DNA of 64,000 bases, taken from positions 14,384,001 through 14,448,000 of the forward strand of contig OZ281497.1 in NCBI GenBank assembly GCA_965637545.1. The letters are read 5' to 3'. This DNA is from Phallusia mammillata. Lineage: Eukaryota. Position 1 is the stretch's first letter, and each line of letters starts with the position of its first letter. The notes under the pieces are model-generated. The model worked only from the letters and a program-made list of their open reading frames with translations. It searched no databases and was not told the DNA's origin. A program made the translations under genes and the position numbers. This document shows, in pieces, positions 11,101 to 29,100 of the stretch.

Positions 11101-14100
11101 GCGATGGCTATTTTCGATATACCTTCTATTCCGGGTTATTCAGGTTTTATTGATGCCCAGTGGTGCATCATCACCTAATTAATACCCGTCGGTTGATTTA
11201 CGCGCAGTGTTAAAGTGTGTCATTTATTGAACGTCTTTGCCTTCTTTGTTGGCAAAGCAAGTTTGTGAAAAAGAATTGTAACCTATTTACCACACATAAA
11301 TTATTTCACGCGTCAGTTCTTCATAGCCACCCAACTTCAATGTCAATGTCACCATATGTCAAGATGGACCTTGTTATGAAATATACTCGTAGCCTTCAGG
11401 AAACCATGGTTCAACAAAGCGTTTGTGTAAAGGGAAGCGACCTCAGCGTCTATCAACAAATTTACGTTCCGTGTTTGAACTCTTGAACTCGTCGTTTCGA
11501 ATGTGAAGCCAAGCGAAATTCCTTGCCGGCTAAAAATCCGAACCCTTGACAGCATGGTTGTCTTGCCTTGTTTTGATGCGATTAAACGACACTCGTGTGG
11601 CCATTGTTGCTGCCGATCTTTGTACGTAGGTCTCTTGTATACCCGTGTGAAGTTGAGAACGCTTCATTGTGATCAACGCTGGTGGGTCAACAAGTTAATT
11701 TTCTGTCACCAGACACTAGTATTCTCCGTCAACGAGAATCGCATTGTTAAATTGTGTTCACAGATCATGGTTTACTCTGGAAGTCGTCGAATACACAAAG
11801 AGAATTATTTTTGTCTTCGATGAAACCATTGTTTTCTTTTGGAGGTCGACATTTGGAAGTTTTGTGGAAAATTGTTTCCGCTCTCGCTAGCAAAATAAAC
11901 GATCTCTGTTATTCATTGACCAGTTGTTGTGAATCGACCTAGTTTATTTTCGTAATCGTGCTTTAAAGCCAACAGTAGCGATTTAAGGCATTGTTTCCTT
12001 CTGACAGTGTGTGAGTTGTATGTCGTGCCACGAACTGTTTCAAACTGAAATGTAGATACCACCGGCCACCGGGTGTATTATTTTACAATTTCTTGCGTCA
12101 CTGCTTGCATGTGAAGTGCAGTGGGAAGTTTTCGCCCTTGAAACTGAAATTCCTCGCAAGCACGGTGGCAAGTGCAGGCATTTCCATTTACTCGTTTGTA
12201 ATGGCTGTGCGCTGACAGAAGTAGTTTAAATTTCAGCCGCATGAAAGCTGCAGGGATTCTGTCAGTGGTAAACGACGCACTTGCCTGTAACGTCTCACAC
12301 GGATTCCGACCAACTAACCTTTACCGACCTTTTATGTGAACCTTGACATCGAAGCCCGCTACCACGTGCGCATACACCCAAAGCCAACAATTCGTTACCG
12401 TGACATTGCATCTCACATCGTCCCTTTTTGCTTCCCTCGCCGTGAGACTCCTCCGTCACGCTAATGCCACTCTCCCATGACCGTACCCCGCTGGCGTATC
12501 GTAAATTTTTAGTCCCCGCCCAGGGGTCGTTTTTACTTGCTTGCTTTTGCTTGCAAGTCTCGACAGCGTTTTGCTCGTCGTCTCGTTGATCCCCTAATCG
12601 CGACTTATCCACGAATCCTCGCCCCACGTTGCTCATCCGTTACTTGTCGTCTAACTTTACAGTCGATCCGCTAAGCGTCGACCAACCGATACACTGGGAT
12701 TTATCACCCTGTGTCCCAGTTTTTATCTTAGTTGTTCCTGCAACATAAGATTGTGTTTCACAGGGTTCAAAATCTTTTGGCTCAATGTGAAAAGTTATAC
12801 AAGTTAATAGGTATTTAGTGAAGTCAAGCGAACTACTGCGTTTTGCATTGCATCGGATGCCTGGTAGGCCCAACACCAAGCACGTTTTTCAATGTGGAGA
12901 ACATGACGAGAATTGGGAGTGAAATAATCGCTTTACATAAAACATGCGAGAAGACTCCTGGGACGCGACTCGTCGGGCGTAAATTCCAAATGGGATTTGG
13001 CTGACTTCGATCCGCCTTGGGAATTCGATTGCCGCCTCGTCTGAAAGCTCGTGTGCAAGAGGGCGCGATGCAAAAATCGTGCACCTCTTCTGTGAAAGCC
13101 ACTGCCGCCTGAGAGTCATATGTGCCATAAGCCAACTAAAAATATCTGTTTTTCAGACGCCTCCAAGCCGTCCGGTTTCCCACACATCGCAATCAACCCA
13201 ACCGTGACGACCGTTGAACTGTCACGTGACACAATTCTACAGTGTGAGATCGAAGGCAACCCCAAACCTACTGTCCAATGGTACAAGGACTATAAACCCC
13301 TCTACGTTGACAACAAGAGAGTGGTGGTGGACTCAAAAGGTTCGTTGTTTTCCACTTGTTTTCGTCCAAATGTTACTCCCGCTGCTTGTTTGCAGACGGC
13401 TTGTTAAACACTGTCGTTGAACATGCATATTTATCTGCGGCTTGTAGTGCACGCAAACATGGCCGCTGAGAAAAGCTAAGTGAACGTTTATGTCGGCTTG
13501 TTCTGTTGCTAAGGGACGTTGATATGTTTGTGTTGTCATGTAGCCGCTGGTGTTAGGTAAGTTCAGGTGCTTGGGAACGATACACTTCGTCCCTTTATTA
13601 AAATGTAATTCAAACAATACGAGGCTTCGTATTTTTAACTTCCGTTGCACTTAACTTCAATCGTGTAACCTCACGCTTGATTTACCGGCTAATGACACTG
13701 GGACATAGGGTTGCAGTCGACATAGATAAGCCGCAGACGAGGTTCACATGAACCACCACTAGCACTTAACAAACCACATCCCAGTCTCACTACGCTGAAG
13801 GAAAACACCACGGTTAACGGGGGAGTGTGAGACACCAGCATTGCAGCCAAGGTCAAGTGCAGGCTACATGCGATATTTCTGGGAAGCTGCGTATTCTTGT
13901 GAAGTCTGCGGTCGATTGTGAAGTCCGTTGCCAAGCAACTTGGAAATGTTTTGAAAGTCCAAGGCCTTTCCTGACGCTATGGCGTAAATTCCAATTTGCA
14001 TTGTTTTCATGGCGAATGTTTGAACTTTGATGTCTGGCAAAGCGCCCCCTAAGGAATATTTGACCTGTGTCCCTTGCTGCGAACCGGTTATGAGCAATAC

Positions 14101-26100: not shown

Positions 26101-29100
26101 ATCCAACGCCAGCCCGACCCAACACCGACAAACCCCTTGCTATTCAGCTGACTTGGACTGCTCTTCCACTGGAGAGAAGTAACGGTCCTATTACCGGTTA
26201 TGCAGTGTACTGGAGAGAGTCCATTATGGATGATGGATTCTACGACCGCCGCCAAGTGGTAGAACCGCTGATTCTCTTCCATCAAGTCGAGCCAGAGTCC
26301 CAGTAAAAACATTGTTGATTGTATTTCCGTAAAAAAGTAACTTTTTCAGCTAACAATTAAGTGTTTTTCTGTCGAGACTGTAAATTGATATTTCACAAGC
26401 ACTATATATATTACACGTATGTCGGTCTAAATCTTTCTGTTACTTTCAGATACGAGTTCCAGGTTTCGGCATTGAACGAAGCTGGTGAGGGCCCGAAAAG
26501 TCCTTCAGTGTTTGTTGAAGTTGAAAACATCGACATTCCTACCATGGAACGACCCAACATTACAGTGAAGGGATTTTCTGTTGTTGAAATTTCATCCGCT
26601 GCTGCTTGGCTAAAATGGACACCGGCAGACGATGAAGTTCTTGATCCACTTTATACGGTTTCTTTCCAGTAAGGGAGTTTCATGCTTTTGTTGTTAAACA
26701 GAATGATTCATATGACGTCACTTACCCTCGTCTGAATTGTGTTAAGTCAGTTTAATAAGCTTAACCAAAATGCACTAAATTTGGGAAAGTAAAATATAGT
26801 TTGTTTTTGGTTAGTCAGATTTGTTTCAATTGGATGGTTTGTTTTGCAGAACATCACAAGAAACTATGGTCCATCGTCAAGAAACATCATCCAACAAATT
26901 TGTTATTAATGGACTGACATCGGGAACGGCTTACAACTTTTCTGTAGAATTGTCTGGTGTTTATCAAGGTAAAAACTTCGCCCAGAAAAAAACACTCACT
27001 GTCGTCAAAAACTAACTTTTCTTAATTAATGTGCTCTTGATTTCAGGAATGAGGACCACACTAGGAACAACTTGGATTATGGAGCGGACTGCAGTTAAAC
27101 TGATTAAGTATTCGCCTGGTGTCAGAAACGAATACGATAATGGTGTGGTTGAGTTGGAGCTATTTGGTGTCGACAATGCATTCAACGTTCAAAAGTATGT
27201 TTTTTGCCTATTTATAGCTTTCGTCTGTTGCATCTCATGTTAAACATATCTTGATTTTGCCAGATATTCAATAGTAGTTGTGCCCGGCACTGCAGAAACT
27301 TATGGCGTGACGACCGATCAGTTTAGCTACGATCAACTTGTGGCGAACTCGAGAACGATGAGAAGACGCCGCAGAAGGAGAAGAAGGCGTCGACGCGAGG
27401 TCAGTAAGACGATAATAAATTGTACAAAGTGTTCTCAGCACTTTAACCTTTGTTTAAATCTGATTTTAAGATACAGATGATGCTTACAGTTTTTTGATTA
27501 TATGCAGTTTTTACGTACATACTGATTGGAACTATATTGAGTATATGTCTGTAGTAAATACTACTTGCTTAAAGGTGAGGTAAGACTATAAGGTTGCATT
27601 TCTGTGTAAGAGCCTGTTCCGTAAGTATATGGCTATTGGTCTCCCACGTCATTTCGAGAAATACTTGCGTTGAATATATTATTTACTTCATATTTTTGAT
27701 CAATTATATTCCTGTTTCAGACAAGCGACGTGCTTCCATTTATCGCTGCCGAATTTTCATCTATGCCGGAGAGAAAATCAATGAACATTAGCGACGGGAA
27801 AAACTATGGTGGATTCGTCAACAAGATTCTGGCTTCCGAATTCGAATATCGAGTTTTTGTTCGAGCCACCCTTAATCCTAGGGTAAGTTAATTTACTTCG
27901 CATGATAGGCGTATTATAGAATAGTTTAGGAGAAAAACGCGATAAATGCATTTTCATGGACATGTTGTGACGAACAGTCGCTGCAGCATTTGACTTTTTT
28001 GAAAAATTCACCAGGCAAAATTTCATCGCGAAACAGTTTTTATGTTGAAATCCTTCCTACACCCGCTATGTTATCAAAGTTTTACACGCGCCCATAAAAA
28101 ACGGAAAAAAAAACTCACGCAGACACGCGTTTTTGATCATGTGTGCAAGTTTTTAGTTTTGTACTCAGCTACTTTTAAATCTGTGTTGCCAAGTGAATCA
28201 AATACCAGTTTCTCTTTTTCAGGGACCTGCAGAGCTTAGCTTTACTTCGGGGCCATTCTCGCACGCGTTTCGGGTACCCGAACCCCCATCGAATATTCCA
28301 CAACCAACCGAAGCTGTTACAGGCGCCGGTTCCACTTGGATCGTCGGTCCGATCGCCGCTGGTGTTGTTCTTATTCTTCTTATTCTCATCATTGTGTGCG
28401 TTAAACGGTAAGCCCTTTTTTAGTTTTAGTTTCTTTTTGTATTCTAATTGTATTGTGCCTTTAACTTTGACGCTGCGTTGGACCTGTGATGGTTTAAGCC
28501 CCAAAAGGTGAGTAGCATGTCGAGCCTTCAGCGCCTTATCATCCAAATCCACATCTCATTTTGTGTTTAAATCAAATATGATTTTAAAGATGGCTGTTAT
28601 ATTTTGACTTTGCATTTTTCTTTTTGTGCATTTTTAGCAGGAAACGGATGAAGAGTGATAACGGGAAAGTCAAATACAGCGCACCGATTAGCAAACATAG
28701 ATCAACAACGAAACAGATCGAGCACGACCCAGTTGAATTGCGCAGACAGAACTGCCAAACACCAGGTTCGTGGCAAAACGCGCAAATCTCTCATGTTTTG
28801 TGACATTTGGATATTTTAATATTTCATTTATTTGTGCGCAGGTATGATGAGTCACCCACCAATACCCGTAAGCGAGTTTAAATCCCACACAGACAGACTG
28901 CGGGCAAATGACAACCTTAAATTTTCCCAAGAATACGAGGTAATTTACTCGGGCAAATTGATCTTGCGTTTACTCTGTATGAAATGTTATAATGTAGACT
29001 ACCAGGGTAAAAGAAGATTACATTTTTAACTGTTCTCATGTTTTCTTCACATTGCAGCACCTTTACTAACAATCTTCGCAGGCTTACCTTTTCCTTAGTG

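Follow-up and report, generated by a model that had tools for sequence, protein, structure and literature searches.

The closest described relatives of the system considered here are the mini-exons of the vertebrate LAR-family receptor tyrosine phosphatases (LAR-RPTPs). Mini-exon B (meB), which reads ELRE in PTPRD and PTPRS and DQRE in PTPRF, lies between domains Ig2 and Ig3; it alters the placement of Ig3 relative to Ig1-2 and hence also which postsynaptic partners bind. Review passages on these exons give them a length of up to 16 residues and place another of them, meD, "immediately before D1" or "near D1", D1 being the first of the two phosphatase domains. We have analysed a window of 64,000 nucleotides (nt) from the ascidian Phallusia mammillata (contig OZ281497.1, positions 14,384,001 to 14,448,000), which contains a LAR-RPTP gene; positions below are those of the window unless another genome is named. 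The reading that we favour, with moderate confidence, is that two 9-nt intronic segments of this gene, named ARD and PKS after the peptides they would encode, are alternative microexons whose inclusion would be low and probably tissue-restricted, and that a third candidate, a 54-nt segment at the FN5 site, is a chance pseudo-exon. Inclusion of ARD (18519-18527) would lengthen the Ig2-Ig3 linker by three residues, and that of PKS, or RPK (28499-28507), would place three further residues, basic or proline, just past the membrane span.

The gene is a single type IIa (LAR-family) receptor tyrosine phosphatase, encoded on the + strand, and it has introns at the exact codon positions of the vertebrate meA, meB, meC and membrane-proximal inserts. 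The sites were mapped on an alignment of the gene model to over 100 vertebrate isoforms and to the Ciona and amphioxus proteins. The initial annotation of this stretch had recognized a LAR-RPTP gene with introns at the homologous positions, and the exon model and the isoform alignment, together with RNA joints at the meA and meB sites, confirm it. In the lines that follow, a slash within a peptide marks the exon junction and square brackets enclose the vertebrate inserts.

13339 to 18100, + strand: meA site, phase 1, DSK/G-YLTI against vertebrate LRS-[ESI][GGTPIR]-GALQ
18210 to 18931, + strand: meB site, phase 1, LYVR/VRRMHPRFS against vertebrate LYVR-[ELRE]-VRR
24527 to 25340, + strand: meC site, phase 0, GDL/EYV against vertebrate DAQ-[WEYDDSTEY]-EMV
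28407 to 28638 or 28641, + strand: membrane-proximal site, phase 2, CVK/RKR against vertebrate LLYK-[(S)SKPD or NKPD]-RKR
28765 to 28842, + strand: membrane-distal site, phase 1, at vertebrate QTPG-[14 or more residues]-MxSHPPIP
13340-18099, + strand: meA-site intron, 4760 nt, skipped whole by the RNA contigs
18211-18930, + strand: meB-site intron, 720 nt, phase 1, from the alignment and an RNA joint
28766-28841, + strand: membrane-distal-site intron, 76 nt, too short for an internal exon

All 24.4 kb of the gene's introns were scanned with a generic splice-site score for frame-preserving exons of at most 60 nt, which yielded 858 candidates, and chance was estimated by shuffling each intron 300 times with its dinucleotide content kept. 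In the 4760-nt meA-site intron the scan gave no microexon candidate above noise, and no meA6-like exon end (...IR-G/GT) was found there. The candidates and signals that concern us are the following.

18519-18527, + strand: ARD, rank 1 of 858, sum 14.0 (acceptor 3.3, donor 10.7)
18489-18518, + strand: upstream signals of ARD, namely a pyrimidine run (18489-18496), a UGC (18500-18502) and a 38-nt AG-free zone before the acceptor
18528-18533, + strand: ARD donor GTAAGT, score 10.7
28499-28507, + strand: PKS, rank 14 of 858, sum 7.4 (acceptor -4.8, donor 12.2)
28432-28498, + strand: upstream zone of PKS, AG-free over 67 nt, in which a pyrimidine-rich tract lies distally and UGC stands at 28456-28458 and 28474-28476
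28508-28513, + strand: PKS donor GTGAGT, score 12.2, the highest of any intronic donor-like site of the gene
24807-24860, + strand: 54-nt meC candidate (18 residues, basic, two Cys), rank 3 of 858, sum 10.5 (acceptor 1.3, donor 9.2)
21542-21595, + strand: 54-nt candidate in the intron between FN1 and FN2, rank 2 of 858, sum 11.4 (acceptor 5.4, donor 6.0), with about 1.3 such candidates expected by chance gene-wide

The ARD segment, at the coordinates first given for it, has the form AG, 9 nt, GTAAGT, and with it the frame is preserved as LYVR-ARD-VRR. None of the 300 shuffles attained its score, the gene-wide expectation being 0.28 such candidates; the in-frame exon candidate with a strong donor and an upstream UGC (at -19) that had been proposed at this place is upheld. 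Donor strength singles out both 9-nt segments: just five intronic GT sites in the 24.4 kb score at least 10.5. Two of them are the donors of ARD (10.7) and PKS (12.2), where the median for the gene is 7.3, and the remaining three (9931, 13557 and 27575) have no usable in-frame short exon upstream.

The same scan was applied to genes with annotated microexons. The Ciona intestinalis control gene was mapped exactly (38 exons, with a translation identical to P0154), and its two insert exons, VRP at the meB site and SPG at the membrane-proximal site, came out at rank 1 (13.8) and rank 2 (12.4; acceptor -0.3, donor 12.7), followed at rank 3 by an annotated 30-nt N-terminal alternative exon; the best unannotated candidate scored 8.9. 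The amphioxus control consisted of scans of three introns. The annotated mini-exons of its meA intron took rank 1 (EQEPDSETLSVS), rank 3 (EDLHIR) and rank 8 (DMGEKLY), and those of its membrane-proximal intron, RKPE and SVED with 12 nt each, ranks 2 and 3. Since both controls recover annotated exons, scores near 14 fall in a range of mostly real matches. Two further amphioxus candidates were observed in these scans: a 12-nt RRPP (locus L003, 61791-61802; 16.2), which heads the membrane-proximal intron and occurs in none of the 15 isoforms listed, and an 18-nt segment (L003, 40147-40164; 12.3) in the meB-site intron.

At the Ciona meB site the NCBI isoforms X1, X3 and X5 (e.g. XP_026690262.1) read IYVK-VRP-KRLAYPRFS and the remaining records IYVK-ERLAYPRFS, the insert being a 9-nt phase-1 exon (locus L001, 10177-10185) with a GTAAGT donor and a UGC at -17. 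ARD corresponds to this annotated microexon in intron, phase and size, as well as in its donor and in a UGC 17-19 nt upstream, and the two exons lie at comparable places below the 111-nt Ig2 exon (258 nt for VRP, 308 nt for ARD). They differ in their effect on the following residue, which becomes K instead of E because the last base of the Ciona exon is A, whereas ARD leaves V as it is, and in that VRP is present in NCBI models while ARD is a prediction. With vertebrate meB, ARD shares the insertion point between Ig2 and Ig3 (LYVR/VRR...PRFS), the flanking residues kept on either side as for a phase-1 exon, and the nature of a very short in-frame exon; it differs in length (9 nt and three residues, against four residues in vertebrates), and a single Arg is common to the two peptides. 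The site is that of mini-exon B and holds a strong candidate, which reads ARD here and VRP in Ciona in place of ELRE or DQRE. We consider it quite likely that the predicted ARD exon is a real alternative microexon.

The PKS segment, likewise located correctly from the start, has the form AG, 9 nt, GTGAGT and is in frame; the insert reads PKS with the downstream acceptor at 28638 and RPK/PKR with that at 28641. This tandem TAG/CAG acceptor (28636-28641) offers two choices that differ by one Arg (VKRRKRMK vs VKRKRMK). Within the 233-nt intron between the transmembrane and juxtamembrane exons, PKS is the sole feasible exon ending at the GTGAGT donor, as longer ones leave an upstream intron of 16-22 nt; a 78-nt exon (28430-28507) was rejected on this ground, its upstream intron being 22 nt. 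The intron, phase and size of PKS equal those of Ciona SPG, a 9-nt phase-2 exon (L001, 20046-20054) with a GTAAGT donor, which appears in the archived sequence P0274 as YTR-SPG-RKNAKG, and the site is also alternative in amphioxus and vertebrates. The inserts known there are (S)SKPD or NKPD in vertebrates, RKPE and SVED in amphioxus (two 12-nt exons) and SPG in Ciona (9 nt). They have in common a junction directly after the transmembrane exon, with the Ciona and amphioxus exons located in the genome at phase 2, and all are short and, apart from amphioxus SVED, contain Pro together with Ser, Lys or Arg; they differ in size (9-15 nt) and in peptide, and the acceptor of the window is the weakest of the set. 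That the predicted PKS exon is a real alternative microexon appears plausible, and we lean towards it. Its designation as meD, adopted in the initial annotation, may be wrong. The intron site and the alternative splicing found there in other animals stand, but PKS is found at the membrane-proximal site instead of beside D1, and the label fits the membrane-distal site better, because the reviews put meD immediately before D1.

Microexons that depend on SRRM3/4 are distinguished by strong donors, pyrimidine and branch signals that are set back, a weak proximal acceptor and, in 74-79% of cases, a UGC between the branch point and the AG (bioRxiv 10.1101/2024.09.17.613571). The regions upstream of the four tunicate exons compare as follows.

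ARD (window): AG-free over 38 nt, UGC at -19, pyrimidine run from -30 to -23
PKS (window): AG-free over 67 nt, UGC at -25 and -43, pyrimidine run from -69 to -61
VRP (Ciona): AG-free over 49 nt, UGC at -17, pyrimidine run from -13 to -5
SPG (Ciona): AG-free over 36 nt, UGC at -15, no pyrimidine run of at least 6 nt

ARD and PKS, with 9 nt each, are of the expected kind in size and donor (at most 27 nt, a multiple of three, a strong 5' splice site), and both have a UGC and a pyrimidine run that is set back, although chance alone often puts a UGC into such an interval and the distal pyrimidine tract is clear for PKS only. The meC candidate also has UGC motifs, at -14 and -47. The architecture of ARD and PKS, as read from the sequence, suggests a resemblance to SRRM3/4 (eMIC)-type microexons, and with it a putative eMIC dependence and neural specificity of the two.

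Several observations weigh against the interpretation of the two segments as microexons. RNA assemblies from four runs, belonging to four studies, were mapped to 13120-19100, which spans the meA and meB sites, and the support they provide there is in the form of contigs, in which the dominant form is kept and minor isoforms, expression level and tissue are invisible; these assemblies are probably transcriptomes, the run shares fitting an exon-only fraction in several studies. The GT..AG joints 13339 to 18100 and 18210 to 18931 are present in all four, and over the interval covered none of the four contains ARD inclusion, inserted letters or any other joint. As these are the sole joints, ARD is skipped in the dominant mRNA, which also lacks any exon at the meA site. 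The acceptor of PKS, for its part, is weak (-4.8) and poor in proximal pyrimidines, and 53 of the 300 shuffles (18%) attained the summed score of this candidate, with 14 such candidates seen gene-wide against 11.5 expected; of the frame-preserving PKS exon with strong donor and UGC first described, the frame, the donor and the UGC hold, but the total lies within chance. The peptides, moreover, are conserved neither at the meB site (ARD/VRP/ELRE) nor at the membrane-proximal one (PKS/SPG/SKPD), and the Ciona inserts themselves come from computed NCBI models (VRP) and from an archived UniParc/MetaClust sequence (SPG).

An alternative is that both segments are pseudo-exons arisen by chance and never included, the gene making the skipped form only at these sites: the joints of the four assemblies are exclusively skipped ones at the meA and meB sites, the PKS total is not significant, and neither peptide resembles those of Ciona or vertebrates. 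Such an explanation nevertheless leaves it to coincidence that the ARD score is absent from 300 shuffles at a place where position, phase and size are those of a Ciona microexon, and that the strongest intronic donor of the gene stands exactly 9 nt past an in-frame AG, in an intron that carries microexons in Ciona, amphioxus and vertebrates. We judge it quite improbable. The skipping seen in the contigs lowers the probability of ARD without refuting it, because contigs drop minor variants; on the refuting condition that had been set for ARD, the observations are dominant contigs that skip the exon in four studies and a Ciona counterpart, VRP, at the same position.

The unequal strength of the two candidates raises the question of whether ARD alone is real, PKS being a decoy donor or a chance match. 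The acceptor scores (3.3 for ARD vs -4.8 for PKS) and the share of shuffles that reach the PKS total speak for this view. Ciona SPG, however, is built in the same style (acceptor -0.3, donor 12.7, UGC at -15), and regulated microexons typically pair a weak proximal acceptor with a distal pyrimidine tract, so that we regard this alternative as unlikely.

A further explanation concerns unspliced contigs of low depth that run from 18181 to 18721-18748, through ARD, in three studies, with a depth of 3-5% of the mRNA in runs X1 and X17 and about half of it in run X5. They may represent an isoform ending at an intronic poly(A) site (Ig1-Ig2 followed by GRLAL-stop), internal priming or slow splicing. 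The splice pair in the Ig2-Ig3 intron could then act on RNA processing, through retention of the first 540 nt or intronic polyadenylation, and lead to a truncated Ig1-Ig2 product, and the AATAAA at 18710-18715, just ahead of the contig ends, and the depth reached in run X5 agree with this. Against it, the unspliced contigs show neither a poly(A) tail nor a loose end, internal priming could arise from an A-rich tract at 18806-18850, and the Ciona counterpart is annotated as coding; we consider this explanation most improbable. Run X1 also contains unexplained low-depth RNA contigs within the meA-site intron, at 17338-17727 and 17803-18006.

The reading of ARD and PKS as microexons does not extend to the 18-residue meC microexon that had been announced in FN5. 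The score of this candidate was reached in 26 of the 300 shuffles, three candidates of that level being seen gene-wide against 1.9 expected, and neither the Ciona isoforms nor the 15 amphioxus isoforms listed have an alternative insert at the meC/FN5 site. It is probably a chance pseudo-exon, and very unlikely to be a real alternative microexon.

With respect to the age of the splice code, the 15 amphioxus isoforms listed are alternative at the meA and membrane-proximal sites and invariant at the meB and FN5 sites, and the Ciona isoforms show no variation at the meA or FN5 sites. Counterparts of the vertebrate inserts are thus found in a tunicate (Ciona) for meB, in amphioxus for meA, in both for the membrane-proximal site and in neither for meC. 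The ends of the meA inserts before GALQIE (...HIR in amphioxus, ...PIR in vertebrates) hint at a common origin of meA. Since no conservation is seen among the peptides, it is position, phase and size that carry the homology. On these grounds part of the LAR splice code probably predates vertebrates. It is possible, and we advance it tentatively, that the meB and membrane-proximal microexons would be ancestral to tunicates and vertebrates, and the membrane-proximal and meA ones to all chordates, all of them retaining position, phase and tiny size while the peptide drifts freely; they would then be length or spacing switches and not motifs of specific sequence. The earlier proposal of a pre-vertebrate code with lineage-specific peptides is in keeping with the annotated Ciona and amphioxus isoforms for meA, meB and the membrane-proximal site, and finds no counterpart in them for meC; the expectation that standard annotation would miss such a code is right in part, the NCBI Ciona models already containing VRP. 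The idea is not wholly new, in that the Ciona and amphioxus inserts already stand in public isoform records; a full-text literature search found no paper describing them. The amphioxus isoforms also include a four-residue VSIH insert inside D1 (EERTR-VSIH-VKCDQYWP; L003, ~61.2-65.6 kb), and the window has an intron at this point (29436 to 29665), within which none of the ranked candidates lies.

The gene itself is documented by translated matches to LAR-family proteins on the + strand from ~2.8 kb to 32.9 kb of the window, which has 0 N runs and a GC content of ~40%. The exon chain was assembled with a phase-aware junction finder, and the resulting model has 36 exons and encodes a protein of 1932 residues with the frame open throughout. 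From the N terminus, the protein has Ig1-3 followed by eight FN3 units, then twelve Arg in a row, a transmembrane segment and, last, two phosphatase domains; Pfam recognizes Ig_3/I-set, fn3 and Y_phosphatase (D1 and D2 exons) in the exon translations, and the HC(X5)R motif is found in both D1 and D2. The model aligns over its whole length with the LAR-RPTPs of Ciona, amphioxus and vertebrates, its identity being 57.5-57.7% overall and ~44% in the ectodomain with Ciona intestinalis and C. savignyi, and ~50% and ~36%, respectively, with amphioxus and a vertebrate. Exon sizes are nearly colinear with those of Ciona (111, 126, 176, 116, 147, 297 nt and on). Identities and exon sizes mark the species as a tunicate at some distance from Ciona. 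A Logan contig of a related species (L002) covers just the second Ig3 exon, outside the meB intron. The reference LAR proteins were taken from a query of representative proteins with the FN4 exon, the ranking of which is dominated by multi-FN3 proteins, and the species' own LAR protein or transcript-derived fragments were not found in the protein searches. The exons that border the sites discussed above are these.

13157-13339, + strand: first Ig2 exon, ending in phase 1 at the meA-homologous position (junction finder, Pfam Ig_3/I-set, RNA joint)
18100-18210, + strand: second Ig2 exon, 111 nt as in Ciona, ending ...LYVR plus one base (RNA joints)
18931-19056, + strand: first Ig3 exon, 126 nt as in Ciona (junction finder, RNA joint, Pfam)
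24319-24527, + strand: first FN5 exon, ending in phase 0 at the meC-homologous position (junction finder, Pfam)
25340-25457, + strand: second FN5 exon (junction finder)
28223-28407, + strand: transmembrane exon, ending ...CVK plus two bases, phase 2 (junction finder)
28638-28765, + strand: first juxtamembrane exon, with the tandem acceptor at 28638 or 28641 (junction finder)

Two other features of the gene were observed. The twelve consecutive Arg, encoded by the exon at 27264-27399, occupy the expected furin cleavage site (a basic site predicted from the sequence), where the vertebrate motif is a far shorter penta-Arg. FN4 is a single 297-nt exon (23739-24035) of equal phase on both sides, which is skipped in the Ciona isoforms P0270 and P0291 and may be a cassette here too.

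Elsewhere in the window, a partial second copy of the 3' part of the LAR gene occupies 51044-52257 and includes a D1-exon-like piece (51044-51151); ~51.3-52.3 kb is a 98-100% copy of ~32.8-33.8 kb, i.e. of the last exon and the sequence downstream. The intervals 41100-47450 and 53500-59850 form a segmental duplication with a spacing of ~11.9-12.4 kb and 90-99% identity. On the - strand, 36969-38850 contains several long open reading frames in adjacent frames, for which Pfam gives a weak zinc-finger match only and which we take to resemble a decayed hAT-type transposase.

The conservation of neural microexons drops sharply outside vertebrates, even in amphioxus, and flies and mice share four exons at equivalent positions (PMC8797185). 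A related case is provided by the Nova-dependent Z microexons of Ciona agrin, where a small neuron-specific exon likewise occupies an equivalent position in tunicate and vertebrate, the gene and the regulator being different (PMC12445529). If the reading favoured here is correct, the LAR-RPTP microexons would belong to the rare neural microexons that are conserved in position beyond vertebrates, and would do so in a gene through whose splice variants synaptic partners are selected in mammals. Ascidian larvae, with their few neurons, would then offer a tractable test of what a three-residue change in the linker does.

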